The notes beneath the pieces were generated by a model. The model ran no database searches and had not been told where the DNA came from. It was given only the letters and a program-made list of their open reading frames with translations. This document shows, piece after piece, positions 23,801-26,800 of a stretch of DNA of 64,000 nucleotides (its first letter is position 1; each line of letters begins with the position of its first letter). A program made the translations under genes and the position numbers. Source of the DNA: Stylophora pistillata (taxonomy: Eukaryota); NCBI RefSeq assembly GCF_002571385.2, contig NW_019217847.1, forward strand, positions 284,992-348,991. The letters run 5' to 3'.

Positions 23801-26800
23801 TAGAAGTATTGACAGAAGTAGAGAAAAAACTGATTTGTGTGACCTAAAGTTGTATTGTTGTCTTTATACTTGAAGCCATTTTAGGCACCATGGTGACTTA
23901 AGTTAAGTATTGGAGGCTTAATTTAGAAAGAAAACAGGAAAGTCAGTGCAATTTGAACTGACAAGACTTGATAGTAATAATAATAATAACTTTTATTTAT
24001 ATAGCGTTCATATCGTGGGCTCATGACGCTTTGCAACACTGTGCGGGCGACTTTACCAGACTGCTAAGCAGTTCACAATCAATGAAAGACAAATCTAACA
24101 GATGCCCCCTCCCCCCAATTCCCAGTAAACAGGCCAGACCACATCACAGTAATCTTGTGAGTGGGTTCTTTAACATCCCCTACCTAACCAAATTAACTAA
24201 TTAATAGATGCAGGAGACGGGACCTACGGTTTATTCGTCCTTATCCGAGAAGACTAGAATGTCTATCCATTTCTTGATNTTATAGAAAAGTAGCACATTC
24301 TCCTCAGTTATTTTAAGACTTTGAGTGTTGGTCCAGCTGGGGCTTGAACCCTCGACCTCCCGCACAAGTCTGGTGCTCAACCAATTGAGCTTCCTTCTTT
24401 GAGTACTCTTAGTTAGTCTTAGTGTTTCTCTGCTAAAACACCCCTCTGGGCTGAATGAAAATGGTAATTTTATTTGGTTTTAGGCTCTTGTACTTTGTCC
24501 CACAAGAGAATTGGCACAGCAAGTGCAAACTGTGGCTTTCCAATATGGTCGGAATACTAATGTCAAAAGTGTGTGCATCTATGGTGGGGCACCTAGGGGA
24601 CCCCAAATTCGTGAGCTTGAAAAAGGTAAGGTAGCCATAACACAATTTGCACCACTCAGAAGACTCTGGTGCTTTAGAAATTTGTTTTCAGTGGCTGTGT
24701 TTTGAAAAGTATTTAACTGCAGAAGTGACCAAAGTTAATTTGGTTTAGATTGAAAATTCAACTCCTGAATTTAGGATTTGCTTGCTGGGAAGTTAGTCTG
24801 GGTAAATACTTTTCATTCAGGAGCCTTAAATAAACTTAATTTCCCAAATCTTTCTTTGTAATGTTACTAACTTGGTGAAGAATTAAGAGGTGTAATTGTT
24901 TTTAGTGTCCCAAATGGCGGGTTGTCATTCTTATGCTGCTATGAACCTGGAGTGCTATGGTCAAAACTTGTACCTGCTGTGTAGGGTACCTAACACTGTT
25001 GGCAGTGAATAACAACCTTACTTCCTCGTTCCTCGTGTTCTACCAGTAGATTTGTGTTTACTGGAGACATCATTGGGAAACTTTCATTTATGTGACTTCT
25101 ACTATTCCTGGTTTTAGGGGTGGAGATATGTATTGCCACGCCAGGAAGACTGATTGACATGTTGGAAGCTGGCAAAACAAACCTGCGACGCTGCACATTT
25201 TTGGTGCTTGATGAAGCAGACAGGATGCTTGATATGGGCTTTGAACCACAGATTAGAACAATTGTTGAACAAACAAGACCAGACAGACAGACACTCATGT
25301 GGAGTGCTACATGGCCCAAGGAAGTGCAAGGGCTGGCAGCTGATTTCTTGCGTGACTGTGTGAAAATCACAGTTGGCTCAGTGGGGCTCACTGCTAACCA
25401 CAAAATCTTACAGATTGTGGATGTGTGTGATGAAACTGAAAAAGACTACAAGTAAGTTAAAAGGTCATTGTCTTTGTGTAGTAAGTTGCAATTACCTGCA
25501 GATGGAATTATTTCCATCTTGCACATGGTTTTTGAAATTTCTTTTTTTTAAGTGTTGATATTATAGTTTTTATCTGGGCCTAGTACTTACAGAATGGGTT
25601 TTGAGTCACCAGTACCCCTTAAAATGTTTCCAATGGTATAAAGTCAAGAGTGGAAGTTCAACTGTAAAGTGACTAGCAAACACAATGTGTTATTTTTGTA
25701 AGGTTGATCAAGCTTTTGGAAGAAATAATGGGAGAGTCTGAAAACAAGGTAATGGAGTCATGTAGTTTTTATTGGTTGCGTGGTTTAAAAATTTATCTTT
25801 GGGTTCTATTGTGTCACGTTGGATCTGTTATTTTATTGTAGTCCCTCATTTTTACTGAGACAAAAAGAAGAGCAGATGAACTAACAAGAAGGATGCGCAG
25901 AGATGGGTTTGTGTTGCTTTTTACTAAACACATTTTGCAGGTGTTACCTGATGGATAGAGCAGCTGATGAATTAGCATTTCATTCCTGAATTTTCATGTT
26001 GACCATTATGAATTCCTCGTTACTGATGCTCTCTGTTAATGTGTGGTCAGATGCATTTTAGTCTTGCAAGTTCTTGTTGTCCAATAATTATCTGTTTACT
26101 TCCCTCAATTTAGATGGCCAGCAATGTCCATTCATGGAGACAAATCACAGCCTGAAAGAGATTGGGTATTAAATGGTATGTGTGGGTTTAAGCCTTGATT
26201 AAGTGAATGAGGTGTGTTCTCAAGTGAGACACTTAACTCCTGCAGTGTCTTTCTTTAATAGGTACTGGCAAACTGTTAGGGAAACTTGATGGATTACTGG
26301 GGGTAGTCTGTAATTGATGTGCTTCCATTTAGGGAGAGAAGGAACACTCCTTGTGGTTTTTATTTTTTGGAAACTATTTGCCCAGTGGCTGCTTAGGCAC
26401 AAAGGCTGACTAGACCAAATTTTATCATAGAATTAAAAAGTTAAGAATGCTGCATTAAGAGGTACAGACAGACATACATACATACATACACGTACATACA
26501 TACGTTACTTAACCACTCCCCATAGGGGCTTTTCAGGGTCAATTCCCACCCATCCCACCCAAGGGGAGGACATCAACTACACAGTAATCTCATGTGTGGG
26601 AAATTAAGGTTACTTCCTACCTTCACGGGTGTCCTTTGGGAAAAAATTTGTACACATGCTAGTTTGAAGAAAACCCTAACAAACTAGACCTCAAAACAAA
26701 GCTTAAATGCAGTTTATGATAAAAATATAATTTAGGTGATTTTTTTAGGAAGTGTCAGGAGCCGGTAAGGCGTGAAACGACAGAGGGTCCTTCTATTTAA

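Follow-up and report, generated by a model that had tools for sequence, protein, structure and literature searches.

A probable intron-encoded box C/D snoRNA in a coral DDX5-type helicase gene, with a guide predicted to direct methylation of 18S rRNA at the yeast snR57 site

Does a short intron in a helicase gene of the coral Stylophora pistillata encode a small nucleolar RNA (snoRNA), and, if so, which nucleotide of the ribosome would that RNA address? The question was raised by an earlier reading, from the letters alone, of a 64,000-nucleotide (nt) stretch of this genome (hereafter the window: NCBI RefSeq assembly GCF_002571385.2, contig NW_019217847.1, positions 284,992 to 348,991 of the forward strand). 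This original prediction placed a box C/D snoRNA in an intron of a DDX5 gene and assigned to it a guide for 18S ribosomal RNA (rRNA) like that of the yeast snoRNA snR57. Having followed it through the genome, through related sequences and through public RNA data, we consider it very likely that the element is a canonical intron-encoded box C/D snoRNA with a guide to the G of AACG in 18S rRNA, at which methylation is predicted. Positions given below are those of the window, and the features at the locus are collected in Table 1.

The unit has a C box near its 5′ end and a D box near its 3′ end (cUGAUGA and CUGA), flanked by a 6-base-pair (bp) terminal stem whose geometry is that of a kink turn (k-turn): two spacer bases (g and c) stand before UGAUGA and none after CUGA, and the 3-nt bulge of the k-turn consists of those two spacer bases and the U of the C box. 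Internal C′ and D′ boxes are also present, the U, G, G and A positions of C′ being conserved and D′ being degenerate in relatives. All of the elements named in the original prediction, i.e., the 76-nt unit, its stem, UGAUGA, the internal and the terminal CUGA and a guide one base before box D, lie where it had placed them. It had also remarked on the C, rather than a purine, at the first position of the C box; this is real and unimportant, relatives showing A, C, G or T there.

Because boxes and guides are short, the number of such arrangements expected by chance must be considered. In the window, UGAUGA and CUGA joined by a stem of at least 5 bp occur in three candidates, as against 1.9 expected from Markov simulations, and the 398-Mb genome contains 50 copies of the guide 12-mer, as against 47 of its reversed control. 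Taken alone, the boxes, stem and guide 12-mer of this single sequence are not significant. The other two UGAUGA...CUGA candidates of the window (787-875 and 16470-16574, both on the plus strand) have stems of 5-6 bp and no evident guide. Elsewhere in the genome, the 16-mer formed by guide and box D has three other exact occurrences, each without a C box, i.e., chance matches, and a covariance model built from the orthologues described below finds one match, this locus, at 82.6 bits; the snoRNA is single-copy in its genome. That the unit nevertheless exceeds chance follows from another source, namely because it is conserved in the orthologous intron of other species.

Orthologues were gathered from the DNA around the closest relatives of the large DDX5 exon and by a pattern scan of metagenome contigs, which together gave 15 distinct sequences. 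A comparison of the orthologous intron, suggested along with the original prediction, bore it out in these coral-like DDX5 sequences: UGAUGA, CUGA and all 12 bases of the guide are invariant, and the stem covaries. The unit was present in every coral-like DDX5 locus that reaches far enough, two loci being uninformative on its presence (in L020 the sequence stops too soon, and in L024 it is divergent beyond position 4919). Mean column identity over the unit is 72% in the 15-sequence alignment and 61% in a more diverse set of eight, and the flanks of the intron diverge freely around the kept snoRNA. The C′ box, in the alignment that we label A2, retains an invariant U, G and final A and a nearly invariant fifth base (G); the D′ box of relatives reads CUGA, UUGA or UUAA. 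For the terminal stem the register was fixed, with a spacer of two bases ahead of UGAUGA and no base following CUGA. Pairing then holds in 94.4% of cells, five of the six pairs include double-sided changes, and none of 500 shuffles was as good for pairing, two-sided changed cells, pair types or covariation score. When the partner columns are slid out of register, pairing falls to 27-56%. These comparisons support the view that selection maintains the unit as a box C/D snoRNA.

The position of the unit within its host gene is also largely preserved. In 13 of the 15 sequences, box D lies 74-88 nt upstream of the W codon of the downstream exon, which carries WPxMxIHGDK. Three of the contigs belong to metagenomes that Vohsen et al. 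2020 obtained from deep-sea corals, namely Leiopathes (a black coral) and Callogorgia and Paramuricea (both octocorals; PMC7068898), and the association with a DDX5 host therefore extends beyond reef-building corals. Searches of two other DDX5 orthologue loci were negative: neither guide nor unit was found in the 20-kb locus of a leafhopper (L032), nor the guide in that of a compact-genome eukaryote (L114).

Two orthologue loci, from two lineages, show a different placement. At L030:4929-4987 and L033:7389-7456 the snoRNA stands about 1.06 kb and 0.57 kb, respectively, upstream of the large helicase exon, and the usual intron between exons E3 and E4 is short (about 120-150 nt) and empty. In L033 the snoRNA is flanked on both sides by DEAD-domain exons of the same gene. 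From the sequence, it looks as if the snoRNA had changed introns within its host gene.

To which nucleotide would the conserved guide be directed? The 12-nt guide, gaattcctcgtt, set one base before box D, is the perfect antisense of the conserved 18S stretch AACGAGGAAUUC (as known from yeast and from a protist primer site). Counting upstream from box D, the fifth base is the c at 26018, which stands opposite the G of AACG in this stretch. Under the box D+5 rule (as stated in PMC5199042), this G would be the methylated nucleotide. In yeast, snR57 guides 18S Gm1572, a 2′-O-methylated G (PMC4344503, PMC5199042) whose modification is stoichiometric (PMC5199042), and Bud23 forms 7-methylguanosine (m7G) at position 1575 (PMC5199042). 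The predicted binding site of yeast snR57, 1569-1583 (PMC3064781), fits a duplex that starts at the second base upstream of box D. In naming the G of AACG, equivalent to yeast Gm1572 and three bases before m7G1575, as the D+5 target, the original prediction thus agrees with the yeast literature (PMC3064781, PMC5199042). The register is exact in all 15 orthologues, and also in most of the metagenome relatives considered below.

The region upstream of the D′ box is a different matter. It is unconserved, and its best complement, at 6 nt, is at or below the shuffled null in the portions of rRNA available (18S model positions 4-1611 and 28S 675-3399); as a second guide it is probably inactive. We read the snoRNA as a single-guide methylation snoRNA, its methylation being predicted.

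The identity of the host gene and the limits of the intron were established from translation and from RNA. The original prediction had named DDX5 (p68/Dbp2) as host, with which both the exon translations and the names of related proteins agree, the relatives of the large exon being called DDX5/DBP2 or ddx17 where their source names them; the exons were searched singly rather than as a joined spliced model. By sequence, then, the host gene is a DEAD-box helicase of the DDX5/DDX17/Dbp2 type. Contigs assembled from three RNA-seq runs contain GT..AG joints from 25746 to 25840 and from 25905/6 to 26113/4, and place the 3′ end of the snoRNA 81 nt upstream of the 3′ splice site of a 207-nt intron, where a distance of about 80 nt had been predicted. 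Hirose and Steitz reportedly found in 2001 that, in mammalian cells, a position some 70-80 nt upstream of the 3′ splice site favours the splicing-coupled assembly and processing of intronic C/D small nucleolar ribonucleoprotein particles (snoRNPs).

Sequence words of the snoRNA were found in eleven runs recorded as RNA, from four studies. In two runs of polyadenylated (polyA) RNA, the contigs over the snoRNA intron have a depth of about 2-6% of that of the messenger RNA (mRNA) contig, and a neighbouring intron of 93 nt has no contig cover in the same runs. Such contigs are compatible with a stable intronic RNA and equally with slow splicing.

A scan of metagenomes recovered the guide in C/D format in 68 contigs (80 instances, forming 43 sequence clusters). 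In these units the 12-nt guide is identical and separated from CUGA by one base, UGAUGA stands 30-60 nt upstream, and many have a terminal stem. They differ from the coral unit in that their bodies are unrelated (hence the 43 clusters), that several stand in tandem clusters and that some have a second guide; only among coral-like contigs was DDX5 seen as the host. In the 20 contigs that were scanned against Rfam, none of the same-guide units reached a gathering score. A few GC-rich units are probably chance matches in coding DNA. Judged by these sequences, the guide is widespread.

Several of these occurrences deserve separate description. Eleven termite-gut contigs (L044, L045, L052, L062, L068, L077, L078, L080, L082, L092 and L095) carry a near-identical C/D snoRNA with 13 nt of the same 18S guide, not beside DDX5 exons. 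It probably derives from the DNA of the termite hosts themselves, which suggests that in some insects this guide is kept in a host gene other than DDX5. On a fungus-like soil contig (L053:3893-4885, minus strand), two Rfam matches to snR61 follow a same-guide C/D unit, which itself has no Rfam snosnR57 score. This layout recalls the snR57/snR55/snR61 cluster of yeast. In L047 and L099 (also in L055, L061 and L071), same-guide units lie in tandem clusters with Rfam matches to snoR38, two of the units directly adjoining such matches, and this snoR38-linked polycistronic layout resembles that of plants or protists.

How, then, is the coral unit related to known snoRNA families? An Rfam search with the snR57 and C/D models, which had been proposed as a check on the original prediction, went against it in that no family reached its gathering score. 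In E-value mode, eleven C/D families align weakly, end to end, over 25954-26035, the best of these alignments being to SNORD98 (20.9 bits) and to plant snoR16 (22.3 bits). These two families share the general C/D architecture along the whole unit; they differ in having other guides, and the scores are far under their gathering thresholds (50 and 45 bits, respectively), so that the resemblance, as far as the alignments tell, is generic. The snosnR57 model (RF00474) was not among the matches at E-values up to 10 on the 301 bases from 25850 to 26150, and its matches in a search of the whole genome were elsewhere, at no more than 29 bits, i.e., at the level of prokaryote controls and below the gathering score of 50 bits. 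The claim of a snR57-like guide therefore holds for the predicted target nucleotide and fails for membership in the Rfam family.

The likeness to yeast snR57 is one of use rather than of descent visible in sequence. In both, a D-box guide addresses the G of AACGAGG (by prediction in the coral), the nucleotide known in yeast as Gm1572, three bases before m7G1575, and in both the C′/D′ motif is without an active guide, as reported for yeast (PMC3116282) and as is probable for the coral. Outside of the boxes and the guide there is no detectable sequence similarity, the duplex is 12 bp in the coral versus a predicted 15 in yeast, and the coral unit is intronic in a protein-coding gene. Yeast snR57, in contrast, is made from an independent polycistronic snoRNA transcript. 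On this comparison we regard the coral unit as a functional counterpart of snR57. In its form it is closer to animal SNORD genes, which it resembles in its length of about 76 nt, its 6-bp terminal stem beside the C and D boxes, its short C′/D′ spacing, its occurrence as one snoRNA per intron in a host gene tied to ribosome biogenesis and its position about 70-80 nt upstream of the 3′ splice site. We know of no published 2′-O-methylation site at this position of human 18S rRNA, nor of any snoRNA hosted by human DDX5. A literature search found no paper on cnidarian snoRNAs for this site or on a DDX5-hosted snoRNA; the main text of a Drosophila RiboMeth-seq paper contains no mention of the site, and papers on Neurospora, on Dictyostelium and on comparative snoRNAs do not mention snR57.

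The mechanism that we propose would run as follows. The snoRNA would be transcribed within the pre-mRNA of the DDX5/Dbp2-type helicase, and, once the 207-nt intron has been spliced out and debranched, trimming by exonucleases would stop at the terminal stem and k-turn, where the core proteins Snu13, Nop58, Nop56 and fibrillarin would protect it. Its only functional guide would be the 12 nt upstream of box D, predicted to pair with AACGAGGAAUUC in the head of the small subunit; through this pairing, fibrillarin would be brought to the G of AACG, which corresponds to yeast Gm1572 and precedes the m7G site of Bud23 by three bases. The C′/D′ motif would be structural and, as in yeast snR57, without a conserved guide.

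Several points weigh against this interpretation. No Rfam family reaches its gathering threshold anywhere in the window. The folding energy of the unit is on a par with that of shuffled sequence (z -0.13), a non-exceptional energy being usual for C/D snoRNAs. The RNA contigs span the whole intron, so that they do not resolve a discrete 76-nt species and possibly represent unspliced pre-mRNA. The 18S copies in this assembly end at or before model position 1611, and the 9.4 kb beside the 28S are N; longer 18S patterns had no match in the genome, and pairing with the 18S of this coral is assumed from the known conservation of the stretch. Methylation at the G is, for this species, a prediction.

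A chance arrangement of short motifs in an intron would account for the ordinary frequencies of box-plus-stem candidates in the window and of the guide 12-mer genome-wide; it is refuted by the 15 distinct orthologues with their invariant boxes and guide and their compensatory stem changes, and we give it practically no weight. Another possibility is a conserved intronic element that regulates the splicing or expression of DDX5 and in which the snoRNA-like motifs are incidental. DDX5-family genes do have conserved regulated introns, and the snoRNA intron is retained at a low level in polyA RNA contigs. However, what is conserved is limited to the boxes, the covarying stem and the 12 nt antisense to rRNA, the same guide-plus-box arrangement occurs outside of DDX5 in many eukaryote-like contigs, and two lineages have the unit ahead of the main helicase exon (in L033, between DEAD-domain exons), all of which makes a regulatory role of this kind very improbable. 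We find it just as hard to credit that the unit is a snoRNA whose relevant target, reached by the D or the D′ guide, is an mRNA, a small nuclear RNA or a transfer RNA (tRNA) rather than 18S rRNA: the region of 18S in question reads N in this assembly, and the D′ region of the window does stand in a proper C-to-D′ frame, but the latter is unconserved with a complement in the available rRNA no better than the null, and the D guide is the perfect antisense of a stretch of 18S that also serves as a small-subunit (SSU) rRNA primer site in distant protists (PMC3045979), an invariant guide thus fitting an invariant target.

The alternative that we take most seriously accepts a real snoRNP on 18S rRNA and disputes only what it does there. 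The particle might act mainly as a chaperone of folding and assembly, or as a timer for the m7G and Nep1/Rps19 steps, with methylation absent or substoichiometric. Deletion of snR57 in yeast suppresses the loss of Nep1, and the binding and release of snR57, rather than the methyl group, have been discussed as the possible cause (PMC3064781). Yet a D+5 register that is exact in 15 of 15 orthologues and in most metagenome relatives matters only for catalysis, and yeast Gm1572 is stoichiometric (PMC5199042); a role limited to chaperoning or timing is accordingly improbable, if less so than the three possibilities just considered. A canonical box C/D snoRNA that guides methylation of the G of AACG remains the reading that we prefer.

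If that reading is correct, a specific 2′-O-methyl group is to be expected in coral 18S rRNA, at a distance of three bases from a conserved m7G in the head of the small subunit. To our knowledge, little has been published on the snoRNAs of cnidarians or on maps of their rRNA modifications, and annotation based on Rfam would miss this gene, as no family reaches its gathering score. The stable pairing of the snoRNA with a DDX5 intron across anthozoan corals, together with the broad occurrence of its guide among other eukaryotes, should be useful for annotation and for studies of snoRNA mobility. At the same time, this is an ordinary kind of snoRNA gene, and the general understanding of snoRNAs is unchanged by it.

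A wider proposal, which we advance tentatively and hold to be somewhat doubtful, is that a snoRNA guide for the G beside the P-site m7G goes back to ancestral eukaryotes, or at least to ancestral opisthokonts, and that this function survives in fungi (as snR57), corals and insects and was lost in the vertebrate lineage. In anthozoans it would have been held in DDX5 since before the sampled orders diverged, its distance from the 3′ splice site being kept, with at least one move to another intron. If true, anthozoans would offer a tractable example of a snoRNA and its host gene inherited together over long periods, and the interplay of snR57, Nep1 and Bud23 could be tested in an animal.

Table 1. 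Features of the snoRNA unit and its host gene, in window coordinates
Feature	Position	Strand	Basis
Whole box C/D snoRNA, 76 nt	25957..26032	+	sequence reading, orthologue-built model, weak end-to-end Rfam C/D alignments
Terminal stem, 5′ half (agagca)	25957..25962	+	pairs with 26027-26032; covariation in 15 orthologues
C box cUGAUGA	25964..25970	+	UGAUGA invariant in 15/15 sequences
Region upstream of D′, putative second guide, probably inactive, 15 nt	25971..25985	+	unconserved; best rRNA complement 6 nt
D′ box CUGA, internal	25986..25989	+	sequence; degenerate in relatives
C′ box UGUUGA, one mismatch relative to UGAUGA	25997..26002	+	sequence and alignment
D guide gaattcctcgtt, 12 nt, antisense to 18S AACGAGGAAUUC	26010..26021	+	all 12 bases invariant in 15 distinct orthologues
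Single base a between guide and box D	26022	+	sequence
D box CUGA, terminal	26023..26026	+	invariant in 15/15 sequences
Terminal stem, 3′ half (tgctct)	26027..26032	+	perfect 6-bp complement of 5′ half
Upstream DDX5 exon	25840..25906	+	RNA contig splice joints and exon translation
Host intron, 207 nt, GT..AG	25907..26113	+	splice joint in RNA contigs, 3 runs
Downstream DDX5 exon	26114..26175	+	RNA contig splice joints and exon translation
Large upstream helicase exon; translation carries SATWP	25120-25452		exon translation

Some further observations concern the ribosomal DNA (rDNA) of the assembly. The rDNA unit at G000:C250:35803-53297 (loci L001, L015-L017 and L019) is incomplete: its 28S is present from model position 675 onward, and its 18S ends at an 'n' junction at model position 1611. 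Positions C250:38554-48000 are all N, and the internal transcribed spacers (ITS), the 5.8S, the 5′ end of the 28S and the 3′ end of the 18S are therefore unreadable. Partial 5′ fragments of 18S, covering model positions 4-1116 or less, occur on G000 contigs C1121, C1422, C1475 (in five places), C1093, C1597 and C1399, and score about 340-535 bits; over the same part of the model, the C250 copy reaches 969 bits. These fragments may be decayed rDNA or the 18S of another eukaryote in the assembly.

Two minor observations lie outside of the snoRNA and its target. Upstream of the DDX5 gene, the window contains a 228-amino-acid open frame on the minus strand (21984-22670) with the motifs ..VDCTE.. 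and ..ADKGFD.., which resemble in sequence those of a Harbinger/PIF-type DDE transposase. Elsewhere in the genome, L011:2166-2734 (G000:C1031) holds three tandem tRNA genes on the minus strand, about 250 nt apart and with identical scores.

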